DNA of 64,000 bases from Anthoceros angustus (Eukaryota; Plantae; Anthocerotophyta): NCBI GenBank assembly GCA_010909165.1, contig MU008160.1, positions 868,001 to 932,000 of the forward strand, given 5' to 3'. Position 1 is the stretch's first letter. Every line of letters starts with the position of its first letter. The position numbers were made by a program, and so were the translations under genes. The notes beneath the pieces were generated by a model. The model made no database searches and was not told the DNA's origin. It was given only the letters and a program-made list of their open reading frames with translations. Shown in pieces: positions 7,761 to 60,900 of this stretch.

Positions 7761-7789
7761 GGCGAGTTGAAGAACCGGCTAAGCGGAAG

Positions 7790-14260: not shown

Positions 14261-16853
14261 ATGGCCATTGTATGGCAACCAGATTCGTTGTGGACCCAGC
14301 AGACTGATCAGTGTACAGGGATTCTAGGAGGAGTTCCTGCTCACCTTCCCCTAGGGAGTCAACCGGTGGGAAACAAGCCCGCCTCCGGGTGCAGGTGCAG
14401 CAGTGTAAGCAACCCATCACTTGCACTTTTGAGAAAATGTGTGGGTGGGCAAGGATTTTTGAGCGATGGTCGTCACCAGCAGTGGCAACAGTCTTTTCTG
14501 GATCCTACCATGGGGTGGGAATACAGGCGAGATAAGAAGAGCTGGCAGTGGCCTGACTTCCGCTGTAAGCGATCCGGCGGCGAGGTCCTCTGCTTAAACA
14601 ACTTGTCGAAGCCAGCTTGGGTGGATGAGCAGCTGGTTTCTTGGGATATACAGAGGGGTTTTGGTGCCTCTCCTTCCAAGTCGAGCTCTCCGGATAAGCT
14701 TGAGCCTGGCAGGCGTGCAGGATTGGAAATGGGGGTGGTATCGGCTGTAACCGTGCGCACGTTATGTCAGCAGGGGAGGCTTTCAGATGCCGTTGGAGCC
14801 CTGGAATCTCTGGCGGAGACAGACTCTGCTATTTCTCAGTCTCTATTTTACACCGTGCTAAAACTGTGTGAAGCTAAGAAGAATGTGGTTGTGGGGCGAC
14901 GAGTTCATGACCTTACAGTCAAACTTGGGTACCAGTCGAATGCATACTTGGGGAACCATATCTTGCGCATGTATGCATGTGGAGGTAGGCTGCAGGAGGC
15001 CATGGATGTGTTCACCAGGGTGGGCGAACCGAACGTGTTCATGTGGTTTTCCATAATCTCTGCTCATGCTAAACACAGGAAACCTAAGGAGGCCATACAA
15101 CTGTACCATGAGATGGGTAGGTCAGGAGTGAAAGCTGATGCTCACGTCTTTGTAGCTGCCCTTCAAGCTTGTGCATTGGCCGCCGACTTGGAATCTGGCA
15201 GAAAAGTCCACGGTGATGTGTTGGACAGTGGCATTCCTACTAACTTGTTTGTTGGCACCTGCCTGGTGGACATGTATGCAAAGTGTGGTGAATTGGAAGA
15301 TGCACGCCAGGTTTTTGAAAGCTTGGCCAAAAAGGATGTGGTGACGTGGAATGCACTGCTATCTGGATATGCACAGCAAGGGCTTGGCCAAGAGGCGCTT
15401 GTTCTGTACGGACAAATGGAACAAGAGGGCCTCATTTTGGCTGACGTTTTTTTGCTTGCCTTCTGAAGGCCTGTGCAAGCACTGGTGCCTTACAGAAGGG
15501 CAGGCAGCTGCACTCACAGATTGTTGCAAGAGGACTGCTGGGTAATGTGTGGGTGGGCAACTGCCTGGTGGACATGTATGCAAAATGTGGTGAACTGGAA
15601 GATGCACGCCAGGTTTTTGACAGCTTGGCCAAAAGGATGTGGTGACATGGACTGCTGATTGCTGGGTACCCAGCAAGGGCTTGGCCAAGAGGCGCTTGTT
15701 CTGTACGGACAAATGGAACAAGAGGGCCTCATTTTGGCTGACTATGTGACATTTGTTTCCCTTCTGAAGGTCTGTGCAAGCACTGGTGCCTTACAGAAGG
15801 GTAGGCAGCTGCACTCACAGATTGTTGCAAGAGGACTGCTGGGTAATGTCGTGTTGGGAAACTGCCTGGTGGACATGTATGCAAAATGTGGCAAACCGGA
15901 AGCTGCACGCCGGGTTTTGGACAGTCTGCCCACAAAGGATGTGGTGACATGGACCGCCCTGATATCTGGGTACGGTGCTTGTGATGAAGGTCACAAGGCA
16001 CTAGCTTGTTTTGAGGAGATGTTAGTTGCAGGTATTCAGCCTAATGATGCTACTTTACTTGCCTTTAGTAGCATGCAGTCATGAGGGACTGGTCCACGAG
16101 GGTCGCAAGCACTTTGATTCCATGGCTGAACAGCATGGTATCAAACCTACTATTGAGCATTACGTTTGCATGATTGATCTTCTTGGGCGCGCAGGCCATT
16201 TGGATGAAGCAGAGAAGATGCTCTTTTCATGTGAGGGCCAAAGTAATGTCGTGGGCTTGACGTGCTTGTTGAACGCCTGCAAAAGTCATGGGGATGTAGA
16301 GAGGGCGCTCTGGTGTTTTGATAGCATTGTGAGGCTGGACCCTCAATGGGCGTCTGCGTACGTGCTCATGGCGAATGCCTATGCAGATGCAGGTAGGTGG
16401 ACCGATGTAGACAGGATTGAAACACAGAGAATGTTAGCAGGAGCTAACAAGAAACCTGCAGTGGCTACCATTGAGGTGGAGAAGCAGGTACATAGATTTC
16501 TGGTGGGAGAAAGAAGAGACGATGTTGCGCTCAAGGTAGAGAGCACGAATGCACGCATGAAGGAGGAAGGAGGCCACGTACCTCACACAAAGTTGGTGTT
16601 GAAGCCATTGCGTGAGAAGGAAAAGGAAGATGCGCTTTGTGGGCATGCTGAGAAGCTAGCTCTGGCGTTCGGTCTATTGAACACTCCAAGTGGGACACCT
16701 CTGGTGGTAACGAAAAATCTACGCATGTGCAGTGACTGCCACAGTTCCACGGAGATCATGTCAAGGGTTGAACAGAGAGACATTGTTGTAAGGGATGGGT
16801 ACCGTGTACATAGATTCGAAAATGGTTGTTGCAGTTGCAAGGGCCGACCCTGA
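14261..16853 (+). CDS. PLS-class PPR RNA-editing factor with N-terminal PDF-like motif, E1/E2 and DYW:KP domain ending in GRP (putative U-to-C); frameshifted in this sequence
   Basis: First in-frame ATG 14261; P-L-S repeats; KKPAVATIEV, HAEKLALA, NLRMCSDCH, CSCKGRP*. Frameshifts at ~15445-15670 and ~16070 (pseudogene or assembly error). Confidence 0.88.
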
Positions 16854-30808: not shown

Positions 30809-33148
30809 TCAGCTTCTCATCGGATATTCCTCCGATGACGAGTCCAGGAGGGACATATGCCCCTTTTCCTTCATTTCGGATACAAGCTCAGAGAGCTTTG
30901 AACGTGTGTTGTCACTCTCCGGATGTTCTTTATCCGCAACCAAAAAGCTGTGAACCAGTCCGTGCATGTCTGTCCACCAGCTCTGGCCTGGCAGCTTCCA
31001 CGCCCCGACTCCTTTCCTTCTTGCTTGGATCTCCTGAGCCTCCTCCCACATCTGGGCACCAGTGTATATGTTTGACATGGACACATATGCTGCAGCGTTT
31101 TTCTTGTCTCGCTTTAGTGCTTCATCAAAAGCATGGCGTCCCACCTCCACATTGCTCCACGTTCGGCAAGCACCCAATAGGGTGTGCCAGACTGCATCTT
31201 GAGGCTGCACAGGCATTATCTGCACCACTGCTAGTGCGTTTTCAAGTTGGCCTGCACGTGCTAATAGGGCCACCATGCACGAGTAGTGCTCTGAGGTGGG
31301 GGCGATGCCGTAGCATCTGCTCATAGCTTCAAAGTACTCTTGCCCCTCTGTCACTAGACCCACATGACTGCACACCGTTAGTACACCGATGAACGTGATG
31401 TCATCTGGCTGGAAACCATCCTCTTGCATGCTGTGAAGCAAGACGAACACCACTTCAGCGTTTGCTTGATGGGCGTATCCAGCAATCAGTGCATTCCAGG
31501 CGACTAGGCTTCTCTGGGGCAATTCATCAAACACTTGCTGTGCATCAACCATGCTCCCACACTTTGCATACATGTTTATCAAACTGATGGCTAAGAACAC
31601 ATCAGCTTGAAGCCCTTGTTTTCGAATCTCAACATGAAGCTGCCTTCCCAGATGCAAGGCTGCAACATTTGCGCATGGCTGCAGGAGGCAAGCAAATGTC
31701 ACAGAATCAGGTGCCACGGCGCCTTCCTGCTGCAAAGCTTTGTAGAGACCAAGAGCTTCCTGACCCATGCCCTGCTGGGAATACCCTGCTATCATAGCAT
31801 TCCAAGTCACCACATCCTTCGTGCCGAGTCGGTCAAATACGCCCTGAGCATCCTCGAGGCTGCCACACTTTGCATACATGTTCACCAAACTGTTGGCCAC
31901 AACAACATCAGCCTGAAGACCTTGCTCTGCGATCTGTGCATGAAGCTGCTTTCCCGTCTCCAAGGCCAAGATACCAACACTCGCGCATGCCTGCAGGAGG
32001 CAAACGAATGTCACAGAATCAGGTGCAGCGATGCCTTCTTCCTGCATGGCTCCGTACAGGCGAAGAGCTTTCTCACCCTTGCCCTGCTGGGAATATCCTG
32101 ATATCAAGGCATTCCAAATCACCACATCCTTCTGAGGAATCCCGTCAAACACTCTTTGAGCTTCTTCCAAGCTGCCGCACTTTGCATACATGTGCACCAA
32201 GGCGTTGCAGACAAACAAACCAGGCTCCACCCCAGTGCTCAACACATGAGCATGCACATCCAGCCCACTTGTCAGGTCTGCTTCCCTCGCACAAGCCTGT
32301 AAGACTGCCACAAACACATGGCAATCTGGCCTCACACTTGACGCCCGCATCTCATGATACAGGTGTATGGCCTGCTTGGTTTGTCCGTGCTTGACATGCG
32401 CAGAGATGATGGCAGACCACGTGAAAGCATCAGGTTTGGAAACCATGGTGAACACATCCATCGCTTCTTGCAACTTGCCATGAGAAGCATACATCCTCAG
32501 GAGGTGGTTGCACAGGAACGTGTCCGAATCATACCCCTTCCACACGACCAGACCATGGACAAGGCGCCCCAGAACCAAATCCCTCGTAGCCACACACTCT
32601 TTCAACACAGTGTACAAGAGAGGCTGAGATACAGCACACCCTGCCTGCCCCAGAGCTCCCACAGCCTCAACAGCCTGTCGGACCTTCCCCTGCTGACATA
32701 GCTTGCACACAACGTCAGCCGTTACACATGTTCCGGCCCCTGTGCGCCCCTCATGATGCACATCATCCAGCAAGTTGCACTTGGATGCACGACCCAACTG
32801 CACATCCAGAGCAGACAGCTGTTGCCGCCCCTTCTCCACAGCTTGAAAACATCCTCTTTCACGGGCTGCTTTGGTTGCAACACCGCTGCCTCTCCAGGCC
32901 TGCTTGTTCCCTAGCTCAAAGCTCGAACACAGATCAGCACTACAGCTCCTCCTACAAGGCAACATGAATTGTCCCGAATGTGTCTTTGTCGCCGACTCCA
33001 CCAGAGCTGTCGCCAAAACGGGCCCTCTCGCCCTCTGCGTGAACCACGTGCAACCATGATTCTCAGAAGCACGCCTTGAGCCGAAGGAGTGAAGCCCGAA
33101 CCCAAAATCCAGCTCCACTACTCCAGCTGCCCTTGTTGCGCAATTCAT
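30809..33148 (-). CDS. Intronless PLS-class PPR protein, E1/E2 with 'WW' PG-box and truncated DYW (E+ type), 779 aa
   Basis: Repeated P-L-S motifs (DAFTWSAII, DVVIWNALI, DSVTFVCLL); C-terminus WKLPGQSWWTDMHGLVHSFLVADKEHPE, then a stop before HxE/CxxC. Confidence 0.93.
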   Translation of the reverse strand: MNCATRAAGVVELDFGFGLHSFGSRRASENHGCTWFTQRARGPVLATALVESATKTHSGQFMLPCRRSCSADLCSSFELGNKQAWRGSGVATKAARERGCFQAVEKGRQQLSALDVQLGRASKCNLLDDVHHEGRTGAGTCVTADVVCKLCQQGKVRQAVEAVGALGQAGCAVSQPLLYTVLKECVATRDLVLGRLVHGLVVWKGYDSDTFLCNHLLRMYASHGKLQEAMDVFTMVSKPDAFTWSAIISAHVKHGQTKQAIHLYHEMRASSVRPDCHVFVAVLQACAREADLTSGLDVHAHVLSTGVEPGLFVCNALVHMYAKCGSLEEAQRVFDGIPQKDVVIWNALISGYSQQGKGEKALRLYGAMQEEGIAAPDSVTFVCLLQACASVGILALETGKQLHAQIAEQGLQADVVVANSLVNMYAKCGSLEDAQGVFDRLGTKDVVTWNAMIAGYSQQGMGQEALGLYKALQQEGAVAPDSVTFACLLQPCANVAALHLGRQLHVEIRKQGLQADVFLAISLINMYAKCGSMVDAQQVFDELPQRSLVAWNALIAGYAHQANAEVVFVLLHSMQEDGFQPDDITFIGVLTVCSHVGLVTEGQEYFEAMSRCYGIAPTSEHYSCMVALLARAGQLENALAVVQIMPVQPQDAVWHTLLGACRTWSNVEVGRHAFDEALKRDKKNAAAYVSMSNIYTGAQMWEEAQEIQARRKGVGAWKLPGQSWWTDMHGLVHSFLVADKEHPESDNTRSKLSELVSEMKEKGHMSLLDSSSEEYPMRS

Positions 33149-33254: not shown

Positions 33255-34790
33255 TCAGGGAGCCCCTCTGCCTCAAGTTCTGAACCATCCCCGCCAGCCA
33301 GCTTGGGTGGATGAGCAGCTGGCGGCCTTGGACAAGCGCATGGGCTTGTTGGGCGATTCAGATCCGTGCTGGGCTGAAATCGTGAGCGCACTCTGCTGGC
33401 AGAGGCAGGTCGGGGAAGCTGTGGACTGCTCTGGAAGTGCTGGTGCAAAGGTGCTGCCGTGTTTGTGCGTCGCTTTTCTGCACCGTGCTGAAGGAATGCG
33501 TGGTGGGCGATGGGGGTCTGGTGTTGGGTCAGGTACGGGACGGACACACTGTAGTGCAACCATGTGGTGAGGATGTACGCTTCTCACGGGAGGTTGCAGG
33601 AGGCGACGGATGTGTTCACCGTGGTTGAGAGACCGGATGCCTTCACCTGGTCTGCCATCATCTCTGCGCATGTGCGGCCTGGAGATGCCAAGCAGGCCAT
33701 AGAGCTGTACTTGGAGAGCGGAGGTCCGATGTGAAGGCAGAAGGTAGACAGGCAGCCCTGCAGGCTTGGGCGAGGGGGAGGAGACTTGAAGGCCGGGCAA
33801 CAGGTGTTGGCTTGTGGGTTTGAGCTGGGTTTGTTTGTATAGAACTCCCTGGTGGACATGTATGTCAAGTGTGGAAGCTTCGAAGGGTGTCCGACGGCCT
33901 TGCTGAGAAGGATGTGGTGACATCCTGGAATGCTTTGATTGCAGGGTATGCTCAGCAGGGCATGGGTGGGGAGGCCCGTCGACTGTTCGGTGAGATGCAG
34001 GAAGAAGGCATAGCTGCATCCACTGCAGTGGCCTATGCGTGCCTGCTGCCGGCGTGTGCGCGTGGGGGTCCTTCGGGTTCGAAGAAGGGGGAGCAGCTTC
34101 ATGCACGGATTCGACATGATTTGCTCAGGCTGATGCGGTGGTGGGTTGCAGCCTGGTGAACAGCATGGTTGACGGATAGCAAGTGCTCGCTGCATTGCCA
34201 GATAGGGGCCTTGTCACATGGAATGCTCCGGTTGCTGGATACACCCGCCAAGGAGACAGTTAGCTGGTCTTCCACTTGCTGCACAGTGTGATCGAAGACC
34301 ATGTCATACAGCCCAACGGCATCACATTCCCTCGTGTACTGACAGTATGCAGCCATGTAGGTCTGGTGCAGAGGGGGCGAGACTTCTTCCAGGCAATGAG
34401 CTGACAACATGGCATCACTCCCACCACAGAGCACTACACATGCGTGGTGGATGAGGCACTCGCCGTGGTAAGAAGCATGCCTATGCTGCCTGATGCGGCA
34501 GTCTAGCACGCTGTTCTGAACTCCTGCAGAAAGTGGAACATGGCACAAATGGCCAGCCAAGCTTTCAATGAAGCTGTGAAGCTGGACCAACAAGATGAAG
34601 CAGCGCATGTGTGCCTCATGTCAAACATTTACACTGATGCTCATATGTGGAAGGAGGCCCAGGATATGCACAGCTGCAGAAAAGAAGCCCGGGCCTAGAC
34701 GCAGGCAGGCCAGAGCTGCTGGACAGACATGGACGGCCATGTGCACGTCTTCGTGGTCGGCGATCTAAAGCATTCATTCAGAAAGTGAAA
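33255..34790 (+). pseudogene. Degenerate PLS-PPR (WW-type) pseudogene, divergent to the preceding gene
   Basis: Remnants: PAWVDEQL (tail of the PDF-like motif), IVSALCWQRQVGEAV, DAFTWSAIISAHV, DVVT(S)WNALIAGYAQQGMG, and AGQSCWTDMDGHVHVFVVGD; many frameshifts. Confidence 0.85.
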
Positions 34791-37960: not shown

Positions 37961-40900
37961 ATGGCGGCAAAGCACTCCAAGAGGCTTCATGTCGAAGTGT
38001 GCAACGCCCGTGGCCTTATGCCGAAAGATGGCCAGGGGTCCTCTAATCCCTACGTTGCGGTAAGCTCAGTGTGTGTCATGAGCGGGGGTGATCGGCCTGG
38101 CTCCAGTGGGGAACCTGTTGCTCACTCTGGTGGGTTTTGCAGGTGGACTTTGAGGGGAATCGGCAGAAGACGAAAGTGAAGACGAAGGAGCTGAGTCCGA
38201 CATGGAACGAGAAGGTTGTGGCTGATGTGGCCTTGGGTTTAGGTGGCAATGCTTTTGCATATTTTGGGATGTTTCTGAACGTCAGTGGTGTGTGATGCAG
38301 TTTGTCTTCAATGTCATGGACCCTGGAAACCCGAACCTTGTGCTCGAGGTGAACGTGTTCAATGAGAGGAAAGTCAACAGACGAAGTGGGTTTCTCGGGC
38401 GGGTTCGGATTCCCATAGCTGAGGTACCTCCGAGAGGCAGGGAGAGTTTGATGTACTACCGATTGGAGAAGAGGAGTTTGTTCTCGCACATTAAAGGAGA
38501 GATTGGGTGCGTGTCTCCAACGCTTGCTGCTGCTGAGGCGTCTGGCACTCTCAACTTTTTCGTGTTTGCTTGCGAGTTAACACTGGTGTTACGGATGATG
38601 GTGGTGCTGCAGGCTTAAAGTCTTTGTAGATGACAATATGATGATGCCAGCGGGGCCTCCCCCTATGGTAGTGGATAAGAAAGCACCTCCTGTGGTGATG
38701 GCAGCAGCAGCACCACCACCAATGCCCATGCCTCCAGTGAACGTACCCATCGCTGCAGCACCGATGCCTCCCATGCCTCCTATGCCTCCTATGCCTGTAG
38801 CAGCGCCAATGCCTCCTGAGCCCGTTATCGCCAGACCTCCGGATGTCCACAAGCCAGTGGTGATGGAGCCTTCGGTGCTTTCATCGGTACCGGAGGTAGA
38901 GTTCTACGTGAAGGAAACAAACCCAGTGTTGGGTGGAGTGATCAGTGAATTTAGGCAGCATCAGCACGCCTATGACCTTGTGGAGGAAATGCCCTTTCTG
39001 TTTCTCAGAGTCGTCAAGGCGAGGTCATTGGCAGCGAAAGATGTGAATGGCAAGAGCGATCCTGTATATATCCGACTTCCCACCTCACCTGTTGTGCAAT
39101 GAGCGATAACACTGAAAGGTACGCTCACTTGTCCTAACCGTGCTTGTGTGGCTTTTGACATGCAGTACGTGAAGATCATGGTGGGGAGTCTTCACGCCAG
39201 AACGAAAACTATACCGAAGAATTTGAACCCTGAATGGAATCAAGTTTTCGCTTTCTCTAAAGGCAACCTTCATGGAGGGTCACTTTTGCTCGAAGTGTGG
39301 GATGAGGTATGTGGGTCCCCAGGACATCTGAAAGCTGTGAGGCATGTGAAAGCTGCGGGGCCGATGAGGGAATGGCAGCACACTGATCTGTTCCCTTACC
39401 ATCGTTCCCTGCCTACCAAACAGGATACTGTCAGCAAGGATGATTTCATCGGATCCGTGGTGCTGAATATATCGGAAATTCCGAGGAGGGTGCCTCCAGA
39501 GAGTTCTCTCGCCCCTCAATGGTACCCACTGGCAGACAAGACAGGAGAAGGGAAAGCGAAAGGTGCTGTCCGCTGCTGCTGTTGTCTGAACCGTTTTGGG
39601 GAAGTCTCTTTCAGCTGTTATGCAAAAGCTTGTTGTGGATAAGGAATTGAGGTGGAGACTTGTTCCGAATCGTGACTTTGCAGGCGATATCATGCTGTCT
39701 GTATGGATGGGCACTCAGGCGGATGAAGCTTTTCAGGAGGCCTGGCAATCAGATACGGGAGGTCAATCTCATTTCCGTTCGAAAGTATACATGTCACCTA
39801 AGCTTTGGTACTTGCGAGTGACTGTCATTGAAGCTCAGGATCTTCATCCACATGACAAAGGGCGCTTTCCAGAAGCGGTATGGATGCTGTGAGCAGACTT
39901 CTTGAGAGTTTGGTTGGGTGTCCCACGTAATTGCTCACTCTAGCATTGGCTGGTCCTTCTCCAGATAGTCAAGGTACACATGGGATTTCAAACCTATACA
40001 ACTAAGCCTTCTGTGACTCGGAGTACCAGTCCATTCTGGAACGAGGAGTTGATTTTCGTTGCAGCAGAGCCTTTTGAGGATATTCTGCATATTCTCGTCG
40101 AAGATTTCCACGGACCCAAGAAGGTGTGGAGCAAGCCTTGATCAGGTTAACTGTAGAGCTTCGACTTCGACCTTTGTTTGTGACGCTTAGATGTGTTTTT
40201 CTCCTCCTGACAGGGGGACATCCTTGGTCAAGTGAAGATTCCAGTCAGGACTATCGAGACTCGCCCTGATGCTCGTCTAGTCGCTTCCAGGTTTAGCACG
40301 TCAACCGGAACTGAGTGTGTATATCTGAACTATGTCGTGTGCTGTGGAAGGACTGAGGTGTCCGTGGGTGCTTGTGCAGGTGGTACGTCTTGGACACTGA
40401 GCGTGAGAAGGGTACTTACAGAGGGCGAGTTCATCTGAGGCTTTGCTTTGATGGTGGCTACCATGTCATGGACGAGGCCTCGAATCACAGCAGCTGCATG
40501 AGACCCACCGACAAGCTGCTGTGGAGACCATCCATTGGGGTGTTGGAGCTGGGTATACTTGGTGCAACTGAGCTTCTTCCTATGAAAACAAACATCCATC
40601 ATAGAGGGAGCACTGATGCATACTGCGTGGCCAAGTATGGACAGAAATGGGTGCGAACACGCACAATCACTGAAAACTTCAATCCCAGATGGAATGAGCA
40701 GTACACATGGGAGGTTTATGACCCTTGCACCGTGTTGACCGTAGGAGTATTTGACAACCGGTATGTGCTCGATGGTGCAGCTGTCTTCATATTGAGCACA
40801 CTCGGCTAATGTTCTCAAGGTTCTAGATTATCGCTGGATTCAGTTGAATTTTTGTTTGATGCAGGCATCTCCACAACAGCTTGTTGGAAAAGGTCGATGG

Positions 40901-42174
40901 GCAGATGGATACGATAATAGGGAAGGTCCGCATTCGTCTGTCTACTCTCGAGAGCGACAGAGTGTACACCAATCTTTACCCTCTCCTGTTGCTCACACCA
41001 CAAGGTGTGAAGAAACACGGTGAGCTGGAGCTAGCAGTCCGATTTTCTGTTGTATCAGTTGTGAACATGATGCAGATTTACACGCAGCCACCTCTTCCTC
41101 GAATGCACTACTACCACCCTCTGGATCCGATCCAGATGGAATTTCTTCGCAGCTCTGCAATGAAGATGGTGGCATCAAGGCTCGCACGGTCAGAGCCTCC
41201 TCTGCGGCCAGAAGTTATCCAGTTCATGCTGGACACCGAGTCCAGCATGTGGAGCATGCGCCGCAGCAAGGCTAACTTCTACAGGATCATGGTAAGTCCT
41301 CTACTTGCCTGCTGACCGTGTCTGTTCAATCCATGGAGCTTGAACTGCCTTTCATCTCACCGCTGCAATGTACCTCTCTCTCTGCAGTCAGTGCTGTCCA
41401 GCGTCATCGCAGTCGGCAAATGGTTTGATGACATCAGCATGTGGAGGAACCCAATCACAACCGGTCTTGTACACGTCCTGTTCCTCATCTTGGTCTGGTA
41501 CCCGGAACTCCTATTGCCCACCATCTTCCTCTACATGTTTCTCATCGGAGTGTGGAACTACCGCTCCCGCCCTAGCTCCCCACCTTTCATGGACGCCAAG
41601 CTCTCTCAAGGCGATCAGGCGGGCGACCCGGACGAGCTGGAAGAGGAATTCAATCTTCTTCCAACATCCAAGACTCAGGAAGTAAGTAAAACAACAAAAT
41701 GTTCATCCTTCTCTCTTTCCTCTTCTCCTCCCCCCATGATTCACCAATGCTTCACCTCGTTACAGGTGCTCTTGGGAAGATACGATCGACTCCGGAATGT
41801 GTCTAGCCGCATCCAGAATGCCATGGGTGACCTAGCCACCCAGGGTGAAAGAATCCAGTCTCTTCTCAGCTGGAGAGATCCCAGGTTTGGATGCTGCCCT
41901 GACTTCCTCCCAACTTGATGAAGCTTTCAATACATCTGGGATCCAGCTGACAAAACCGATTTTCGTTGCTTTTTTTTGTATCAACAGGGCTACAGGAATC
42001 TTCATCCTCTTCTGCCTGATCGCGGCTGTGGTTCTCTATGTTACTCCGTTCAGAGTGGTGGCCGTGCTCCTTGGCATGTATGCAATGCGGCACCCAAGAT
42101 TCCGAGAGCCTTTGCCACCCGCGCCCTTGAACTTTTTCCGCAGGCTGCCATCTCTGTCGGACAGCATCCTGTAA
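37961..42174 (+). CDS. MCTP: Multiple C2-domain and transmembrane region protein (MCTP/FTIP1/QUIRKY family), ~14 exons
   Basis: C2A RLHVEVCNARGLMPKDGQGSSNPYV; YDLVEEMPFLFLRVVKA; KLWYLRVTVIEAQDL; GSTDAYCVAKYGQKWVRTRTI; WSMRRSKANFYRI; PRT_C region ending NFFRRLPSLSDSIL*; GT-AG introns traced. Confidence 0.95.
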
Positions 42175-42600
42175 CTGACAGTACCCGCCTCTGCGAGCTA
42201 ACCCGGACTAGTACACACTACCTTACCCGGACGAGTATACTACCTTACCCGGCATCATCAGCACACCCAGATCACTTGTGTGCCCCATTTTTCTTTTGTA
42301 CATGCCCATTTTCCTCGGGGTTCCACCGATGTATCCTGTTTCTAACATTATTTTGGCCTGATGCAGTAGGCTACCTGTAGGTACCTTGCCGTGAAGTACC
42401 CCAGCTTCCTGCACATTGTTTGGAATAGGGTACACCTAGAAATATGTCTCGCAAATATTTTTTTGGAAGCGGGCATAAAATTTTAATTAATTACGTACGC
42501 GATTCGCTTGGTTCTATGGTTAGCATGACAATTGTCAGAAGTTATGGAAATTTTTATACAATATGCCCTTATGGGAATGGGAAGATGTAAGGAGAGAGTG

Positions 42601-42730
42601 GGAAGAACCCTTGAAGGATCCTAGGCCAAGGGGGCCACCTCCGGGGAAGAACTCATGAAGGACCCTAGGCCAAGGAGGCCACCTCGAGGGAAGAACCCAT
42701 GAAGGACCCTAGGCCAAGGGGGCCAACTCC
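42601..42730. repeat. 44-bp tandem x3 in the CRE 3' UTR
   Basis: ggaagaacc..tgaagga.cctaggccaagg.ggccacct units start at 42601, 42645 and 42689. Confidence 0.9.
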
Positions 42731-42900
42731 TGCATTTAATGTTGTCCTGAAAATTGCCGCAAGAAAGCAACCACACAACAAAGGGGGAGACCTATCCCAT
42801 TCTTACGGGTCTAGTAGGCCTTAGCTCAACCCTTAATAAACTTTGGAAAATCCTTGCCCATGGCCCTATGAGTCTCGGTAGCAAGAGGAATGAAGTAGCA

Positions 42901-43140
42901 AGAGGAATGAACACATGGCCTTCCTGCATGGGGGTGTACTTGTGAGCCTTGGCTGTCGTGCATCCCTCCGCCACCCAGCCAGAGGAATGAACACATGGCC
43001 TTCCTGCATGGGGGTGTACTTGTGAGCCTTGGCTGTCGTGCATCCCTCCGCCACCCAGCCAGAGGAATGAACACATGGCCTTCCTGCATGGGGGTGTACT
43101 TGTGAGCCTTGGCTGTCGTGCATCCCTCCGCCACCCAGCC
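42901..43140. repeat. 80-bp perfect tandem x3 at the CRE internal-deletion junction
   Basis: agaggaatgaacacatggccttcctgcatgggggtgtacttgtgagccttggctgtcgtgcatccctccgccacccagcc occurs three times identically. Confidence 0.97.
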
Positions 43141-44344
43141 TGGAGGCTTGATGATGACATGCTTGGAGAAGGCGCCCCACATGATGCGCGAAGCAGGAAG
43201 AGAGGATACCAAATGCCACCTATGGGTCCCCTATTATAGAGAGGTCGCCAATGTGAGCCAAATCCTCCTTTAGAACAGCATCCACATAATCTTGAATAAA
43301 GTCCGGAGGCCCCACCGAGACCCCTGAAACGCGTAGTCCCCGCAAAAAGCAATATCCCCATTGGGATAATGAAGAGATGGCGTAATTCCTGACGGAGACC
43401 AAATCTTGAACTTCAGAATCTTGACATTCAAATCGAGGCGGGAGAGCTCCAGGGAGAATATTTCGTAAGCTTCCTTGACCTTGTCCCCCGGCCCTATGAT
43501 ATGTATGAGTGTCATCTAACACTAACGGAAAGAGACCTTTCCACAACGAGGAGGTAGCTGTGGACAGAGCCCTGAAGTGCGTCATGGCAAAGAGGGCACC
43601 CCCCATGAGATCCCTTTTCCTAGTGCCTGTCGTCGAGTCAAGCATGACGACCCCATCCAATGAGGGACCCTGCTGATAGTAAATGTTAGATAGGGAACTA
43701 TAAAAAGAACGGACAAAAAGGATACGACTTGCCAGCTGCCCGCCCACATTTTTTAGCTCGTTCAAAATGGCCGTTTTGGAGATGGTATTGAGGCATTCTC
43801 CACATCAGCCTGCAGGGTACCCCAGTCCGGATGTGACTCAAGAACTGCTTCGACGCTTAAGGCCACCGACTGACAACCCCTTTCCCCCCTCTCTCCTCCC
43901 CATATTGATGAAGACCAAGATGAGCTCGGAACTACTACCGGAGCTGGAGGGCGCTGCTAAGGCTTACAAGCCATAAAATGCCTCCCCCATGGCTTTAGGG
44001 CGCACCCCCGAAGTAGGCTTCTTTATAGCCAATAACCTACTAGTCCCCAACACGTGGAAAATTCGATGGGGGGTCTCCTCTCTTTTGCCACAGCTGCCAC
44101 CGGTTTAAAAAGCTCAAAAAAACCACTAAGAGGATCCTCAGGAGTAAAATAGTCTCGGAGGTGGTAAAAAACTGTTCCCGACAAACCACCCAAGGAAAGT
44201 CGCGAGGCGGTGGTTAGAGCCTGGCGAAAACCGCCCTGTCCAGACAAAACTGCTCTTCCACTACAAACTTTGAGATATCCTGTGAAATAGGGACACATGG
44301 ATCCGAATGAAGGGTATGAAGAGCAGCGATGGTCTCCTCCAAGG

Positions 44345-45781
44345 CTAGCACATAATGGGGATGGACTTGGACATAACGGTTGGCCAAGCCGCCATGGGGT
44401 GTCCAGGTGCATTCACAGGGAAGTGCGGCAGCTTGTCAATCTTGATGACTTGCTGGGCATGCCCTCCCAATGCTAGCACGTCCTTCATAGCATGATCAGG
44501 TCGCTTGGTGAACGACCTTGCACACTTCAAATGTTCCAAGGGAGCAAGGTTAGTCCACATGGACCTCAACCTATGAGCCCTCGAACCAAATTGAGCTGCA
44601 TCCAATAGTAGCTCCTGACCCAACACTCCTCGGATCGTGCCAAAGTCCTCATGGACTTGCTTCTTTACGCTCATGCATGCTGACACATTCTTCAACATGT
44701 ATCCACAAGGCCTTTCTTGCCCTTTCTGGATCAAGCACAAGATCCTCATCAGGTCATAGAACAATGTTGTTCGTGGATCCTTCACACCCTGATCCTTGCC
44801 TGCAGAGGATAATCCTTGACACTCCCAACCTGCGATGACAAGGTCCACCGGTTGCCCAAGACAAGTCAAATGGGACAACCCAATCATGCGAACATCCATC
44901 GGCAGTGCCTTCTGGTAACCCTTCACTGACTCCCACGTCAGGAGGTTAGGGTATTCCCCCATCAAGTCCTTCACGCGCTTCTGTGACACAATACTTGCTT
45001 TTGGATTCAGATCACAATGCACGTATCTTCGTACTTTGATGCCACACTTCAGCATTGCTTCCAAACCGGTACTAATGCCTCCAAAGAGTTCCATCAGCAC
45101 TATGCCGTCTTCGTGAGGTCGCCATGTGATCACCTGGGTGTTTAGATCACAAACAGGCTCAACCCTAGGCAAGAACTTACAGCAGTTCTCCGGCTCATAG
45201 GACACTGGTCCTTTTGCACGGCTCATTGTTGCAATCACCAGCTCCGTCCGGCTGACTTGAAGAACCTCCTCTGAGGGTGGTTGCAACTCTAGCTTGTCTT
45301 CCTCCTCCTCGTCGAAATCCTCCATCAGGTCAGCTGCGGTTGTTAGACACACCCCAAGAGGTTCAAGCACGTATGGCGTGTCCGTCACCACGGTGCCAAA
45401 CACTGGGTAGACGCTATTGGCAATGAGGTTTCTCATGATCCTTGCCATGCAGCTACAAAGGGATGCGGGCAATTCATTCATCGGTTTTGCTCCAGCTTCT
45501 CCAGCCTGGTCGATAGTAGACTGTCTCCATCCACAAATCCACCATGACTCCATGTTTGTACAAAGCGTCCGCTCCCAACAAGACATTAAATGTGTCTGCA
45601 TCAATAACCAAGCAGTGTACCTCGACAAAGGTGAAGTTAGCTTGTTGGTTTCAATCACAACAACGACAGGTTTGTTGGTTTCAATCGCAACAACGACAGG
45701 TTTGTTGGTTTCAATCACAACAATGACAGGTTTGTTGATCTCCACTCCGATGTATTGTGTTGGGGGCACTTGCCTATACAA
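44345..45781 (-). pseudogene. Second gypsy-derived protease-tail plus C5 DNA methyltransferase (DNMT3-like) fragment; open frame, lacks motifs IX-X
   Basis: GIVLMELFGGISTGLEAMLKCGIKVRRY (I); PVDLVIAGWECQGLSSAG (IV); YMLKNVS (VI, E>K); DAAQFGSRAHRLRSMWTNLAP (VIII); upstream alternate frame CLVIDADTFNVLLG..YRPGW is the protease tail; intronless. Confidence 0.88.
45642..45740. repeat. 30-bp tandem x3 inside the protease remnant
   Basis: ttgttggtttcaatc(a/g)caacaa(c/t)gacaggt units give KPV.VVIETN repeats on the minus strand. Confidence 0.92.
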
Positions 45782-46260: not shown

Positions 46261-48819
46261 TCAGTGCCGATCCCCACAAGAGCACGCACCATTCAGAAAA
46301 CGATGTACTCGGTGTACATCTCTTACTATGATTTCTCGATGCTCCACATGTGACATAATCTTGGTGCTGCTGTGGCAGTCATGGCACATGCGCAGGTTTT
46401 TTGTCACTAGCAGAGTTGTACCATCTGGAGTGTTGAGCAGACCATATGCCAGAGCCAGTTTCTCGGCATGTCCACACAAAGCGTCTTCCTTCTCCTGCGC
46501 AGAGGCTCCCTTCAGGACCAACCATGTTTCCGGAACATGGCCGCCCAATTTCAACTTCGTACTCACATCCCTCAGCATCGATGCAACATCAGACCTCTCT
46601 TCACCCACTGTGAACTCATGCACCCTGTTCTTCACCTCGATGCAAGCCTTGGCTGGTTTCTTTCTAGCACCTGCCCCCTTTCTAAGGCTTTCTATGTGAT
46701 CTAACTCCTCCCACCTGGCAGCATTTGCATACATGCTACCTAAGAGAACGTACGGTGTTGCTACTTCAGGTTCTATTTCTACAAGGCGTTGGAAGCATCG
46801 CTCTGCACGTTCCACATCACCGTAGCTTTTGCAGGCACTTAGCAGGGACGTCCACCCAACCACATAACAATCCAGTGGCATGGTCAGCAGAATATCTTCT
46901 GCCTCATCCAAACAGCCTGCGCGCCCAAGAAGATCAACCATGCAGCTGTAGTGATGATCATCGGGGACAATGCTGTAGTCATCCACCATCATCCGGAAAT
47001 ATTGCAGGCCTTCAAGGACGAGCCCTGCATGACTACATGCCACGAGAAGACTACTGAAGGTAGTCCCATTAGGCTCCACGTCTTGCTGAAGCATCTCTCT
47101 GAAACACTGGAATGCCATGTGGCCATCACTGTGCTCAGCATAGCCATTGAGCAGAGCGCTCCATGCGACCACATCCCTGATGGGCAAGGCATCAAAGACG
47201 GACCGTGCATCTTCCAACCTTCCACATTTTGCATACATGTCCACCAGGCAGTTGCCCACCAGCACATCTGTTTCCAGTCCTCTTTCACGGATCTGAGCAT
47301 GAAGCTGCATTCCCTGCTGCACAGCGCCGACAGTGGCACATGCTTGAAGGAGAGAGAGAAATGTGACACGATTAGGTGAAGTGATGCCCTCCTGCAGCAT
47401 ACTCTCGTAAAGACACAGGGCTTCTTCAGCCATTCCCTGCTGTGCAAACCCTGCAATCATGGCAGTCCACGCCACCACATCTTTGGTGGACAATCCGTCA
47501 AAAACTCTGCGAGCATCCTCTACACTCCCCCATTTAGAATACAAGTCTATCAAGCAGCTCCCAACTACAAGATCACCTTCCAGTCTCCTCTTCTGAATCA
47601 ACTCATGAAGCTGCTTCCCCTCCTGTAAAGCCCCGGCACTTGCACACGCTTTCAGGAGACACACAAATGTGGCTTGGTCAGCTGGAGCAATGCCCTCCTG
47701 CAGCATCCTCGAATACAGAGCCAGAGCTTCCCGACCCATCCCCTGCTGTGTATACCCTGTGATGATGGCATTCCATGTCACTGAATCCCTAGTTTCCAAA
47801 CCGTCAAACACTTCACGAGCATCGTCCAAGCTCCCGCATTTTGCATACATGTTCACCAGGCTGTTACCAACGAAGACATTGGGCCGCACACCACTGGTCA
47901 CAATATCCGCATGCACCTGCTTGCCTGAAACCAAATCCGCTGCATTGGCACAAGCCTTAAGAACTGCCACAAATATATGGTTGTCAGGCTCCACACCCGA
48001 TTCTCGCATCTGCAGGTAAAATCTGATAGCTTCAGCTGGCTTTCCCTGTCGAGCAAAAGCCAAGATCATGGACGACCACATGTAAGCATCTGGAACAGGC
48101 ACCTTGCCGAACACTTGCACAGCTTCCTCCAATTCCCCGTGGCAAGCGTACATACAGATGATATGGTTGGCCAGGAATGCGCTAGACTCGTACCCACTTC
48201 TAACAGCCAGAGCATGCACCCGCTTCCCTACACCCACATCCCTCAAAGCCCCGCATTTTTTCAAAACCAGCCTGAAAACAGACAGGCTTACAGAACATCC
48301 TCTCTGCACCAAGAGCTCCAACACGTCAACAGCCTCGCCCATCGACCCATTCTCGCAGTGCCTGCTCAAGGTCTCAACCATGCTAGATGTGAATTTGGAC
48401 AACTCAACATCCCTCCTGGCCAGCTCCTCATCAACCCACTCAGGCTTATACAAATTGTTGAGCCACAGTGCCTGCTTCGAGGTCTTGTGCCTGAAGTCAG
48501 GATACTGTGGGCTCTTGACATCCGCCCTGTAGTCCCACCACTGCCAGGGATCTGAGAAGAAGTCTTGCCACAAGACCTCCTGCCGCTCCTTCTGCCCCTG
48601 CCCAGCCTCTGCTGCTCCCCGAGCCACTGAGGACGTTCCTGCTATTGCCCCCAACTGGCACATGCGGTTGCCAACATATCTACCATCCACAAACCAGGCT
48701 TGGCTGGCGGACAACATACTGGGCTGTTGCAGAAACGTACATCCTTGAAGCTTCATAACCACAACACGCGTCTCTGGAAATCGCAGATTACACGTACACA
48801 TCTCATGTGGAATAGCCAT
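46261..48819 (-). CDS. Intact intronless PLS-PPR editing factor: PDF-like motif + PLS array + E1/E2 + DYW:KP ending DRH (putative U-to-C)
   Basis: First ATG at 48819 (the ORF track starts at TTG 48843). WQDFFSDPWQWWDYR...YPDFRHK...ALWL; 14 PPR motifs; RKKPAKACIEV; HAEKLALA; NLRMCHDCH; CSCGDRH*. Confidence 0.95.
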   Translation of the reverse strand: MAIPHEMCTCNLRFPETRVVVMKLQGCTFLQQPSMLSASQAWFVDGRYVGNRMCQLGAIAGTSSVARGAAEAGQGQKERQEVLWQDFFSDPWQWWDYRADVKSPQYPDFRHKTSKQALWLNNLYKPEWVDEELARRDVELSKFTSSMVETLSRHCENGSMGEAVDVLELLVQRGCSVSLSVFRLVLKKCGALRDVGVGKRVHALAVRSGYESSAFLANHIICMYACHGELEEAVQVFGKVPVPDAYMWSSMILAFARQGKPAEAIRFYLQMRESGVEPDNHIFVAVLKACANAADLVSGKQVHADIVTSGVRPNVFVGNSLVNMYAKCGSLDDAREVFDGLETRDSVTWNAIITGYTQQGMGREALALYSRMLQEGIAPADQATFVCLLKACASAGALQEGKQLHELIQKRRLEGDLVVGSCLIDLYSKWGSVEDARRVFDGLSTKDVVAWTAMIAGFAQQGMAEEALCLYESMLQEGITSPNRVTFLSLLQACATVGAVQQGMQLHAQIRERGLETDVLVGNCLVDMYAKCGRLEDARSVFDALPIRDVVAWSALLNGYAEHSDGHMAFQCFREMLQQDVEPNGTTFSSLLVACSHAGLVLEGLQYFRMMVDDYSIVPDDHHYSCMVDLLGRAGCLDEAEDILLTMPLDCYVVGWTSLLSACKSYGDVERAERCFQRLVEIEPEVATPYVLLGSMYANAARWEELDHIESLRKGAGARKKPAKACIEVKNRVHEFTVGEERSDVASMLRDVSTKLKLGGHVPETWLVLKGASAQEKEDALCGHAEKLALAYGLLNTPDGTTLLVTKNLRMCHDCHSSTKIMSHVEHREIIVRDVHRVHRFLNGACSCGDRH

Positions 48820-48979
48820 GGAAACCCAACCCGGGTCGAACAAGACAAGAAGAGATGTCGTCGCCCTTCTCCATCTCCTGGTTCCTCGTTTTCTGAGCTG
48901 CTTTCGCCTTGCAAGAGATCTCCTTTACATGAACTCCTCAGCGTTTAAAAGAACCGGATCCACTTCATAAGTAGTCGCT

Positions 48980-50829: not shown

Positions 50830-51698
50830 GGGTGCCAGATTTCAAGGGATAAGGGAGGAGTGGATAAGCATGGAGGACAAGGGAGAAGTGGATGGGCATG
50901 GGTATGTCATCAGTCCATTTGATTCAACTTTATCTTCAAAACTATTCAAGGGATAAGGGAGGAGTGGATAGGCTTGGGGGATAAGGGAAGAGTGGATAGA
51001 CATGGGGATAAGGAAGGAGTGAATAGGCATAGATATGTCATCAATCCATTTGGCTCAACTTTCTCTTCAAAAATCTTCAAGGGATAAGGGAGGAGTGGAT
51101 AGGCATGGGGGATAAGGGAGGAGTGAATAGGCATAGATATGTTATCAATCCATTTGATTCACCTTTCTCTTCAAATCTCTTCAAGGAATAAGGGAGGAGT
51201 GGATAGGCATGGGTGATAAGGGAAGAGTGGATAGACATGGGGATAAGGGAGGAGTGAATAGGCATAGGTATGTCATCAATCCATTTGATTCAACTTTGTC
51301 TTCAAAACTCTTCAAGGGATACCGAAGGAGTGGATGCGCTTGGGGATAAGGGAGTGAATAGGCATAGGTATGTTATGAATCCATTTGATCCACCTTTCTC
51401 TTCAAAACTCTCCAAAGAATAAGGAAGGAGTGGATAGGTGTGGGGGATAAGGGAGGATGAATAGGCATGGGTATGTCATCAATCCATTTGATTCAACTTT
51501 CTCTTCAAGGGATAAGGGAGGAGTGGATAGGCTTGGGGGATAAGGGAAGAGTGGATATGCATGGGTATGTCATCAATCCATTTAATTCAACTTTCTCTTC
51601 AAGGGATAAGGGAGGAGTGGATAGGCTTGGGGGATAAGGGAAGAGTGGATATGCATGGGTATGTCATCAATCCATTTGATTCAACTTTCTCTTCAAAA
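50830..51698. repeat. Modular purine-rich tandem array (variable ~95-130 bp units)
   Basis: Modules aagggataagggaggagtggatagg..ggggg and atgtcatcaatccatttgattcaactttctcttcaa repeat several times. Confidence 0.9.
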
Positions 51699-52056
51699 CC
51701 CTTTGTTGGTTGGCACCTCATTCGCGTTCAACTTTCTCTTCAAAACTCTTCGTTGGTTGGCGCCTCATTCGAGTTCAACTTTCTCTTCAAAACCCTTCGT
51801 TGGTTGGCATCTCATTCGAGTTCAACTTTCTCTTCAAAACGCTTCGTTGGTTGGCACCTCATTCGAATTCAACCTCCTCTTCAAAACCCTTCGTTGGTTG
51901 GCACCTCATTCGAGATCAACCTCCTCTTCAAAACGCTTCGCTGGTTGGCACCTCATTCGAGTTCAACCTCCTCTTCAAAACACTTCGTTGGTTGGCACAT
52001 CATTCGAGTTCAACTTTCTCTTCAAACCGCTTCATTGGTTGGCACGTCATTTGAAT
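51699..52056. repeat. 47-bp tandem x~7.5
   Basis: cccttcgttggttggcacctcattcgagttcaactttctcttcaaaa units, head-to-tail without spacers. Confidence 0.95.
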
Positions 52057-52436
52057 ACTGATCCAACTGAAGGGTGCTTAACCTAGGAGTTCTTATGTCT
52101 TTGCTATCCAACTCGCTCATCTCAAACTCTTGAATTGAAGAAGAGTATTTATATGCAATTTAGAAATGCATAGATACTTAGAGGTTTCACTAATCACGAT
52201 CTAAGCAAGCGGGGTGTGTTAACCTTGATTAAGGGTTTTGACCAAGCCACTAACCACCTGGAGTGCATGCCTTGATACAATGGATCCGGATGGAACTATC
52301 AACTAGCAAGTCCATCGGAGCGAGTTCGAAGTCCCGATCAAGAGAGAGAAGTACGAACACCTCAGTTCGTGTCTTATGTGTTGCCATTCACAGATCCTTT
52401 AAAGATTGTTGATTGAGTCGTTAGGTTCCTCCGCGG

Positions 52437-57970: not shown

Positions 57971-60900
57971 ATGGATGGCGGCGATCGCTCCAGCTACGGC
58001 ACCGGCGCTGGCGTTGGCGGCAAGGCCAGGTCCGGCGCAGCGCCCAACCGGCGCAAGACGCCCTACGATCGCCCCTCCCAGGGCCGCCACGCCTCAGCAG
58101 GCCCGCACGCCGCCGCGCAAATCAATGGAGCGGCTCCAGGCCCCCCCTCCTCGTCCTCCTGGCTCGGCGCAGGCCTCGTCGGCACCGCCTCCAAGTTCTT
58201 GACCACTAGCGCCTCCTACCTCTTCTCTTCCGTTTTCCGGCGCCGCGAGAATGCCGACACTCCGTTGGCTCTGCCCCATGGCGGCGACACTAGTCCAGGT
58301 ACTGCTCCGAATGTGTTGATCCACTACCTGCCTTCCTGTTTCTCGCCTGCCCACCTGCTTTGTCTTGCTGCTGGAATGGCTAGGTCACCGCTCCGGCGCC
58401 TCGTTCAGCTGTCCTTAGGGGTCGGGTTTCGGCCGCGGCAGCTGCCCAGCTGCTGCGTGCTGCGGTGAGGCAGGCTGGCCCTCTCCAGCATAGTCTGTCG
58501 TGAACTGGCCCTGACTGTATTTTGTGCGTGACTCCTGTGTGGGGGTTTCGTTTTTATGTGACAGTCGAACGGGAAGATAATGGCGACCATGTTGTACAAG
58601 TTTCGCAATCCAAATCTATGGTAGGTTGGTGTTGCTTGTTCGTTACGTTAGTCTCAGTTTTGGTTCTGGAACCGCGACCTAGGTTATGCGGATTTGGAGG
58701 CGCAGCGCGGTTTCTTGTTCATCCTCAGCAAGAAATGGTGGTCACACTGGTTCCTGTCTCTTTTTACAGGAGGTTGGCGATGGGCAGGGAATACCGTCAC
58801 ATCAGCAGCACATCACCGAAACATCTAGGTCGCCTGAATTGTTATGGAGAAAACCGACTCTAACCAGGTGGGGTGGCGCCCATTCCTCAGGCAGTCCAAT
58901 GCAGTTGCTTTAGGTTTCGTGTAAGTGAGTGGTGAGCTTCTGAGTTAGGTCTTGGCCCATTGTTCCAGCTTCTTATGCTTGGGTTTTTTGACTACCAGCG
59001 AGGAGTATATCCGCCTGACCCAAGTACTGCAGTCAAGGCTTGTTGACAATGGGGCTGGTAAGGATCACGTGAGTGGGGACCATGAGATGAAGGGCACTGC
59101 GGATGGGTCTGAAGATGTGCTCGAATATGGGACACCAGTAGGGACCATCAGATGGAGGGATCATGTTGATGATTCTAGGCAAAATGGAAGTCCGCATAAT
59201 GGAGCTGTGGAACCTTTCTTGGCTGCGGCTGGTGGTCGTGAGGTGAGCTTTTTGCCTTCTTGTTTTTGGTTTACTTGAGTTTGAAATCAAGATTAGAGTC
59301 CGCACACTCTTTCTCTAAGAAGCTATCTATTTGATTGTCCTCCGGACACTAAATCATGTCATTCACCTGTACGCAGTTGAATAATGGATCTGATTCGCCT
59401 GTTGAGATTGCAAGGGCCTTCATGGGAGATCGTGTGGCACGAGTACCTGGTTCTTTGTCACCCGCACAAGCACCGCAATTGGCTCCAGCAAACTCTGCTG
59501 ATCCAGGCTCCTCTTCCTTACCTGTCAGCACCAGTGTCGTTGTTAAGAAGTCAGCAACAAATGAGTATTCTCATAATATATTCCAAACACCTGCAATAAC
59601 TTGGTCTTCCAGACCTATCGCAGGGCTTTATGGTACTCCATATAGCAGGCCAAGTCATGGGACGGCTGCAAGAGAGGTAGTATGGTTGCCTTCTCATAGT
59701 TTTGAGTTGATGTGATGTAGGAGTATGCGATTGTGATTTATTTTGAATTGTCTGGGTGCAGCTTTCGGTTAGACCATCACTAGATGGTTCAGCACCTACA
59801 AGGTGGACTCCTATCAGGGCACCCCTTATTAGTGGTCCCCAGGTAAGATTGGTCGCTCTCAGTGTATCATCATGATTTCTACCTGGGAGCTGCAACATAC
59901 TGATGTTGTATTTGCCTATGGCTTGCATTTTTGACTGCAGAGTTTGAAACGGAGGAGCAATGCTCTGGATGATGGCTGGGCTTCAGTGGGTCCCATCAGA
60001 AGAACAAAGCGAAAGTCGACAGTGGCACCCTCTGTAACTGGCTCTGGTCTGTCGAGATCTTTTGGGGAACCGTTGGATAATAATGCAGGTGAAGCAAGAC
60101 TGTCGAAGACAACTTTGCTGGAATCGGACAATAGGAGCAGCCTTTTTGGGGAAAGCTTTTCTGGTAGAGGGAAGACTATTGCTGGCAGTAGTGGTTTGAA
60201 AAAAATAGATGACCGGAAGAATGTGTCAAGTGCAGTAGTACCTGCTCAATCAACTGAGACTGCTCGTAAAATACTGGAGACGTTGGATCGAATGGTACCA
60301 TCCCCTGAGCAGAAGAAGCTGGATGATGAGCTGGCCTGCGTCCGTCGAAAGCCACCTGGTCGTTTGACTGACGATATGCTTAATGATCGGGCCCGGAGGA
60401 GCATGCAGGACTCTGGAGATTTAGATTTAGGGACCCCAGAACTCCAGAGAACAGCAGGTTATTTTTCAGGACAAGCTGCACAAAAATCTACACTAAGTGC
60501 AGCAAATGGGAAAGGTAAAGGTAAAGCGAGTTCGTCTAGCGCGCTCCCTTTTATCTCTGACGAGGGAGCTGCAAGGGTGGAAATGTTCAACTTTGGTCCT
60601 CATGCGGCACCAGATTCTGCAGAAGGTTTTTCAAGGAATCTTAGGTCTCTGGCCCAGGTTGATGCGTCTACTCCTAGCGAGCAGGGTGGCTTTCGGATGA
60701 GTATTGATTCTGATGTAAGTACTTGAGGCTTGAATGCATGTCGTTTGAAAGTTGATTCTGGCTTGTAATTTCACATGATGAGGTTTGGCTTTGTAAATAT
60801 GCTGGTGTAGATCATTTATATACTTGATCAGTTGCAGGGGTCAGACTCAGATCGTGAAGGGGCAAGGAATGTTCAGAAGGCAGTTGGAGGTGTAACAGTT

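Follow-up and report, generated by a model that had tools for sequence, protein, structure and literature searches.

A stretch of 64,000 nucleotides of nuclear DNA from the land plant Anthoceros angustus (contig MU008160.1, positions 868,001 to 932,000), here called the window, carries two copies of a DNMT3-like C5 methyltransferase sequence. The one under study, copy 2 (about 45626-44369, minus strand), is very probably an internal piece, now without function, of a Ty3/gypsy-type retrotransposon belonging to the streptophyte Gypsy-DNMT3 lineage. This kind of element is already known from KnitGypsy-Dnmt3, and copy 2 is a relic. It is inactive because it has neither methyltransferase motifs IX-X nor any of the other element functions, stops cut translation from upstream and Lys occupies motif VI. 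A first-pass annotation, made from the letters of the window and its open reading frames (ORFs), had already called copy 2 probably inactive on the strength of a Glu-to-Lys change. The inactivity stands, but its main grounds are the loss of motifs IX-X and of the other parts of the element, with the Lys as an additional one.

Reading frame, motifs and limits of copy 2

The program-made ORF listing gives copy 2 as a minus-strand ORF of 478 amino acids at 44345..45781. The ORF matches the Pfam family PF00145 (E 1.9e-8), and the PDB match is DNMT3A (E 3e-8), the best solved structures by sequence being DNMT3A/B/C. A family profile built from 133 relatives, with copy 2 left out, matches 44366-45136 with 296 bits (E 4.6e-89; profile positions 20-283 of 399). 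By tblastn the methyltransferase region is 37-39% identical to the relatives P0169 and P0171 (E 2e-64). Together, tblastn, the hidden Markov model (HMM) and PF00145 delimit an acidic linker followed by a DNMT3-like C5 methyltransferase with motifs I-VIII and the target-recognition region (44369..45322, minus strand). The first-pass annotation described a frame open for more than 230 codons from motif I to the target-recognition region. It is in fact open for 257 codons across the methyltransferase match and for 318 when the acidic linker from 45322 is included. At its start the ORF has 150 or so codons that encode no part of the methyltransferase. They read, in an alternative frame, through a protease tail and a 30-bp tandem repeat of 3.2 units that adjoins the 5′ edge of the fragment (45642..45737; Tandem Repeats Finder and blastn self-hits). 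This N-terminal extension is a chance alternative-frame ORF. The length of an ORF was discounted as a sign of function, as the 64-kb window holds 47 ORFs of at least 150 amino acids, many of them in alternative frames.

Motif I, which binds S-adenosylmethionine (AdoMet), reads LMELFGGISTGLEA (45056..45097, minus strand) and aligns to LSLFDGIATGL of DNMT3A. The F-x-G-x-G AdoMet loop is present, with ELFGGISTG in copy 2 and LFDGIATG in DNMT3A, and the second Gly of the GG pair occurs in all 134 rows of a census comprising the 133 relatives and copy 2. Motif IV, IAGWECQGLS (44807..44836, minus strand; GGSPCNDLS in DNMT3A), keeps the catalytic Cys, and Glu replaces the canonical Pro of the PC pair. 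Across the census the Cys is found in 133 rows, preceded by Glu in 88 and by Pro in 36. Judged from these alignments, GWEC, with Glu before the catalytic Cys, is a family trait shared by both architectural classes described below. Motif VIII is RAHRLRSMWTN (44549..44581, minus strand), aligned to AHRARYFWGN of DNMT3A. Its R-x-R signature is present as AHRLRSMWTN; row counts in the census are 133 and 132 for the two Arg, 131 for the Trp and 133 for the Asn.

Motif VI, which aligns to FENV of DNMT3A, is YMLKNV (44684..44701, minus strand), the Lys being encoded by AAG at 44692-44690. The Glu of this motif is essential in C5 methyltransferases. It is present in all 133 relatives, and copy 2 has the sole Lys among the 134 sequences. 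The contrast drawn in the first-pass annotation between KNV in copy 2 and ENV in copy 1 holds (YMLKNV versus LAENV). The signatures it had listed as common to the two copies, GI.LME, GLEA.LK.GI.VR.Y, PVD/GWEC, AHR....WTN and K.DK.P.FP/WPT, likewise all occur in both.

The domain halts after AAWPTVMS at 44369, past the target-recognition region. Intact relatives run some 90 residues further through motifs IX/X (SYAFR..PG...EP..ERERA.GY..G.T....R..LGR.MD). These motifs, present in the relatives and in DNMT3A, complete the fold and the AdoMet pocket. Downstream of 44366 there is no HMM match to them (profile positions 284-375) in any frame. A frame-2 stretch, LALEETIAALH...CLDRAVF, bears a faint likeness to motif IX/X by eye and was rejected as a remnant, there being no HMM match at E 10 with filters off. 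What follows the domain is seven non-homologous codons, KSIPIMC, and a stop (44345..44368, minus strand), which mark the 3′ break of the fragment in the HMM match and in comparison with relatives.

Upstream of the methyltransferase lies the C-terminal tail of a retropepsin, VEVHCLVIDADTFNVLLG...YYRPGW (45501..45626, minus strand), identified by tblastn with residues 796-860 of P0169 (35% identity), by motif search and in the frame listing. The part of the protease that bears the active site is absent. The same protease tail had been reported before both copies, and it is indeed there, as CLVIDADTFNVLLG..YRPGW at 45614-45501 in copy 2 and, by motif search, as CLVSNARNYDVLL..YRQRW at 5446-5540 on the plus strand in copy 1. 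In copy 2, however, its frame is offset by two bases from that of the methyltransferase. The linker between the two (45400..45500, minus strand; tblastn and frame reading) contains all the disabling changes of the fragment: in-frame stops at 45476-45474 (TGA), 45455-45453 (TAG) and 45416-45414 (TAG) and, after these, a shift of frame around 45423-45400. The homology with P0169 spans the first two of these stops (IARIPL*LHG versus GYIPLDLHG), and because it runs on across them they are secondary nonsense changes. A programmed frameshift from protease to methyltransferase is ruled out by the same persistence of protease-frame homology past the first two stops.

In tblastn, full-length relatives match copy 2 only at 45626-44369, an internal fragment of about 1.27 kb. 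A full-length query, P0062, matches by residues 964-1214 only, and the same search detects no reverse transcriptase (RT), RNase H (RH) or integrase (IN) downstream of copy 2. The fragment is also without gag and most of the protease. Split direct repeats of the A-coding-B-A-B type, which flank complete elements, are absent around it in a blastn self-comparison.

The Gypsy-DNMT3 lineage and its relatives

Copy 1 (2759-12924, plus strand) is a structurally full-length, coding-dead element of the same lineage, as assembled from the segment listing, Pfam, tblastn and self-blastn. All its parts lie on the plus strand. Self-blastn places its terminal repeats at 2759-3358 (A1), 12191-12290 (B1), 12314-12822 (A2) and 12820-12924 (B2), with the A repeats about 80-88% identical. 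Methyltransferase pieces in the segment listing (5858-6730) include GWECG, ENV and degenerate motifs IX/X, and this domain is broken by several stops and by six or more frame changes, the rest of the coding region being likewise full of such defects. RT, RH and IN follow at 6995-8882 (Pfam RVT_1 and RT_RNaseH; tblastn with P0171 and P0062). Copy 1 also contains an internal tandem duplication of about 1 kb (10020-10988 and 11045-12000, 85% identical). The observed/expected CpG ratio is 0.90 in copy 1 (1.02 in its methyltransferase part), 0.53 in copy 2 and 0.44-0.51 in host genes (PPR, PRP8); it is the old, decayed element, copy 1, that is not depleted of CpG.

An exhaustive search of 1.84 billion representative proteins with copy 2 returned 1802 matches at E <= 1e-3 and 131 at E <= 1e-30, many of them polyproteins of 1000-3400 amino acids. 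The best relative, a full polyprotein, is 45% identical; a word-indexed search reached 42%, and a metagenome scan found one locus at 40%. No relative closer than 45%, as sought for a codon test, occurs in the collections searched. Two architectures are found among these proteins. In the majority class the methyltransferase (MT) lies between RNase H and integrase, in the order RT-RH-MT-IN-PHD. This family includes P0001, P0003, P0005, P0008 and P0019, and about 85-88 of the 179 retrieved proteins show parts of this order. One example is annotated as 'pol' in Scenedesmus sp. PABB004 (KAF8056149.1), most others come from metagenomes, and no description of the architecture was found in the literature searched. 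In the smaller class the order is gag (zinc knuckle)-protease (PR)-MT-RT-RH-IN.

Members of the smaller, PR-MT class are the K. nitens protein GAQ93235.1, several Closterium proteins, a protein of the liverwort Calypogeia fissa and P0062, an uninterrupted ORF of 2188 amino acids with the full order CCHC-PR-MT-RT-RH-IN. GAQ93235.1 (P0094), the only K. nitens protein recovered, has the order zf-CCHC, protease, methylase and fits the published description of KnitGypsy-Dnmt3, a DNMT3-type domain in a Gypsy Pol. The first-pass annotation had taken the uninterrupted frame of the second copy as confirming a family trait. A trait of the lineage it is: a methyltransferase placed after the protease recurs in GAQ93235.1, Closterium, P0062 and Calypogeia.

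The Calypogeia fissa locus (L001) is a nearly complete element with separate ORFs for gag-PR-MT, RT and RH-IN. Its repeats, at 6283-6732 (A1), 16031-16194 (B1), 16193-16642 (A2) and 16642-16805 (B2), are 99-100% identical. A DIRS-like A-coding-B-A-B layout has been reported for KnitGypsy-Dnmt3 by de Mendoza et al. 2018 (PMC5890265), and the same layout is found in copy 1 and in the Calypogeia element. The latter also contains short repeats of 68-215 bp, 100% identical and one of them inverted (8082-8296, 12343-12557, 13606-13673 and 15486-15639). They stand at or beside several of the gaps between ORFs and may be small insertions or may interrupt the polyprotein frame.

The domain is related to DNMT3. 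Against the PDB the family profile ranks DNMT3A (4.7e-26), DNMT3B (4.5e-24) and DNMT3C (1.1e-23) ahead of DRM (about 2e-14), M.HhaI (1.6e-9) and DNMT2 (1.5e-6), and no chain named DNMT1 is among its 56 matches at E <= 0.01. By this ranking of similarity, which is not a rooted phylogeny, the domain is closer to DNMT3 than to DNMT1, DNMT2, DRM or the bacterial enzymes. An AlphaFold model of the intact relative P0160 (residues 47-417; pLDDT 90.5) retrieves DNMT3A/B/C for all of its top 50 Foldseek hits, with a target-normalised TM of about 0.8. Copy 2 itself is 31-44% identical to transposon copies versus about 20% to DNMT3A.

In a FastTree of the methyltransferase domain both window copies fall in a 27-row clade (support 98), on different sub-branches. 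This clade holds all 12 PR-MT rows, including K. nitens P0094, and no RT-RH-MT-IN row. The Mesostigma protein P0074, in which only the methyltransferase was detected, belongs to the same clade by that domain. An IQ-TREE of 65 rows sets the RT-RH-MT-IN class opposite the window copies across a branch with an SH-aLRT of 87. The identities of copy 2 are 41% with the Calypogeia domain, 31% with that of K. nitens, 44% with the best RT-RH-MT-IN protein and about 36% with copy 1 over 112 alignable columns, so that the two copies are as clearly diverged as first noted. Their low identity and separate sub-branches therefore indicate ancient independent subfamilies and not a recent duplication.

Selection on the domain in at least two subfamilies had been proposed from the window copies. 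They cannot show it, because copy 1 is frame-broken and copy 2 is a truncated fragment. A dN/dS comparison between them was dropped for their low identity, the frame changes of copy 1 and saturated synonymous sites. Support comes instead from the wider family, in which the motif VI Glu (133 of 133 relatives), the motif IV Cys (133 of 134 rows) and the Arg, Trp and Asn of motif VIII are conserved. In these alignments, near-invariant catalytic residues across deeply diverged elements are real evidence of selection in active elements, and a Ka/Ks below 0.2 reported for K. nitens copies (PMC5890265) agrees with this conservation. At most conserved columns copy 2 still agrees with the family, and its methyltransferase frame is open most likely because purifying selection acted on the source element until not long before it was broken up.

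In intact members a single polyprotein has the order gag-PR-MT-RT-RH-IN, and DIRS-like split direct repeats lie on either side of it. Being part of Pol, the enzyme would be present where cDNA is made. De Mendoza et al. 2018 proposed methylation of the element cDNA or insertion and demonstrated that the DIRS enzymes of Symbiodinium methylate CG sites (PMC5890265). Following that proposal, the enzyme may act during retrotransposition, most plausibly by methylating the new cDNA or the new insertion, and such methylation could affect how the host treats the copy.

Alternative origins and fates of copy 2

Several observations weigh against copy 2 being simply a decayed Gypsy-DNMT3 fragment. All four disabling changes are clustered within about 30 linker codons and none occurs in the next 345 (post-hoc P about 1e-3), a pattern not expected of a uniformly decaying relic. 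Its placement is also tentative: in the IQ-TREE it sits next to the split between the two classes (support 66.9), its closest single match, at 44%, comes from the RT-RH-MT-IN class, and the domain trees cover sequences of the family only. At the level of the family, an assay of KnitGypsy-Dnmt3 in yeast was inconclusive, with no methylation seen, and the role of the enzyme in the element life cycle is a proposal (PMC5890265).

The clustering bears most directly on the idea that copy 2 is a domesticated, catalytically dead accessory or regulatory protein of the DNMT3L/DNMT3B3 kind, kept by the host after the element decayed. Every disabling change lies upstream of the domain, leaving 345 codons free of any within an open 478-codon ORF. 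Mismatches at conserved columns (2 of 32 conserved at >=90% and 5 of 47 at >=85%) lie within the range of intact family members, and the CpG ratio of copy 2 resembles that of host genes, unlike that of copy 1. Such a protein might be translated from an internal ATG (the first in-frame one is at 45601-45599) and modulate host or transposon DNMT3-type enzymes. It would however be short of motifs IX-X and of the fold-packing helices at the C-terminus, and it would end in seven unrelated codons. In addition, no homologue of the truncated form occurs among 1.8 billion representatives, where the best match is a full polyprotein, and ORFs of 150 codons or more are common in the non-coding frames of the window. 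Domestication is accordingly very unlikely. Still less credence, next to none, can be given to the ORF being a host DNMT3 paralogue or pseudogene. DNMT3 is known to persist in non-seed plants, and the nearest solved structures are DNMT3A/B/C. Against these two points stand a retropepsin tail directly upstream, as in the transposon lineage, the lineage hallmarks GWEC and AHRLR..WTN, an identity to transposon copies well above that to DNMT3A, and the absence of host features: copy 2 has no PWWP/ADD-type N-terminal or any other Pfam domain, and no intron signal in the 318-codon match.

A further alternative concerns origin only and is compatible with a dead fragment. In this scenario the reverse transcriptase of a non-long-terminal-repeat (non-LTR) element, while copying its own RNA, would have jumped to an RNA of Gypsy-DNMT3, which predicts a 5′ Gypsy piece joined to a 3′ non-LTR piece in one orientation. 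The Gypsy piece of copy 2 is abrupt at both ends, and the same-strand sequence downstream (44365-42750) holds a repeat that is also found downstream of copy 1. By eye this sequence has the non-LTR-like motif GTRKRD..GGALF, with a CCHC and a THDAVRD tail in the copy at 12735-13355. The downstream pieces nevertheless have no reverse transcriptase or endonuclease match in Pfam or PDB; neither a poly(A) tract nor a target-site duplication nor microhomology at the junction was seen, and a nested insertion followed by deletion gives the same layout. A chimeric retrocopy is unlikely, if less so than domestication. An internal fragment of a Gypsy-DNMT3 retrotransposon, with its methyltransferase truncated, is the preferred account of copy 2.

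Genomic setting and known systems

The repeat downstream of copy 2 (42754..43213, minus strand; blastn/tblastx) lies outside the methyltransferase element. It recurs downstream of copy 1 at 13347-13633 (plus strand) in the same relative orientation, at 69-77% identity, and has no Pfam or PDB match at either place. The ORFs that surround it, at 12735-13800 (plus) and 42750-44100 (minus), look non-LTR-like by eye (C..C..H..C with THDAVRD, and GTRKRD..GGALF). A non-LTR identity for the shared repeat was set aside, as searches of Pfam and PDB gave no support. Tandem repeats are found at 42897-43140 (80 bp x3, 99% matches) and 42600-42730 (44 bp x3).

Host genes occupy other parts of the window. 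An intron-containing PRP8 gene was read from ORF translations at about 21.8-29.5 kb (minus strand). Several intronless pentatricopeptide repeat (PPR) genes of the DYW type were likewise read from translations, among them an intact, Pfam-checked PPR-DYW gene at 46261-48843, whose closest named relatives (Diphasiastrum, Calypogeia, ferns) are 40-45% identical, with Logan contigs reaching 61%. Further PPR genes lie at 14225-16853 (plus), 30809-33148 (minus) and 33273-34608 (minus); among these, one is broken into three overlapping ORFs and contains GQEALVLYGQMEQEGLILAD as a repeated segment, and one ends without a DYW domain. The sequence at 33273-34608 offers only overlapping ORFs of 169-277 amino acids and is read as a putative decayed PPR copy. 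A C2-domain membrane-protein-like gene (40881-42174) and a protein with short FG-like repeats (59944-63832) were recognised by eye from their translations. At 51561-52086 (plus) three overlapping ORFs, one per frame, encode similar repetitive peptides of about 30 residues (SSTFSSK.FVGWHLIRVQLSLQN).

It is rare, and poorly understood, for retrotransposons in conflict with their host to carry the very enzyme that normally silences them. For the green lineage, the literature searched describes this from K. nitens alone, and papers of 2025-2026 too cite the streptophyte Gypsy-DNMT3 element only from that alga. The window and the Calypogeia fissa element show that the same lineage, with its gene order and split repeats, persists in land plants, that two or more subfamilies of ancient divergence (about 36% identity) occur together in one genome and that Glu-Cys in place of the catalytic Pro-Cys marks the lineage. 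The occurrence in land plants, the two ancient subfamilies in one genome and the Glu-Cys motif appear undescribed in that literature. Together they widen the range of natural sequences, and make it easier to work with, for studying how the enzyme benefits the element. Copy 2 itself has no functional importance unless it has been domesticated.

Among known systems, KnitGypsy-Dnmt3 (PMC5890265) is the closest, being likewise a DNMT3-like, non-rearranged C5 methyltransferase inside a Ty3/gypsy-type Pol. The gag-protease-methylase order of GAQ93235.1 is common to the window lineage, and both belong to the same FastTree clade. The host of KnitGypsy-Dnmt3 is a charophyte alga, that of the window copies a land plant rich in PPR-DYW genes, and the K. 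nitens domain is only 31% identical to copy 2. The K. nitens protein has PC at motif IV, in contrast to the Glu before the catalytic Cys in most land-plant and Closterium members and in both window copies. Copy 2, moreover, is no intact element: it is truncated, and its motif VI has Lys. The Scenedesmus-type RT-RH-MT-IN-PHD elements have a homologous methyltransferase, and P0001 is the best match to copy 2 (44-45%). GWEC and AHRLRN.WTN-type signatures are common to these elements and copy 2, although the former have ENV and the latter KNV. They differ in the position of the methyltransferase between RNase H and integrase and in a PHD finger after the integrase, and the main split of the domain tree sets them apart from the window copies.

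The animal DNMT3A/B/C catalytic domains have the fold and the motif order of the copy 2 family. Identity is about 20%, and copy 2 sits in a transposon context without regulatory N-terminal domains. DNMT3L and DNMT3B3, the inactive partners, lack catalytic competence as copy 2 does; in copy 2, however, the truncation goes beyond changes of catalytic residues and removes structural elements. SymbioDIRS-Dnmt3 of Symbiodinium (PMC5890265) is likewise a retrotransposon Pol with a DNMT3-type domain, and it is the only case in which de novo CG methylation by a transposon enzyme has been shown (PMC5890265). Likened here by its description only, it is an independent acquisition by a tyrosine-recombinase (DIRS) element in a dinoflagellate host.

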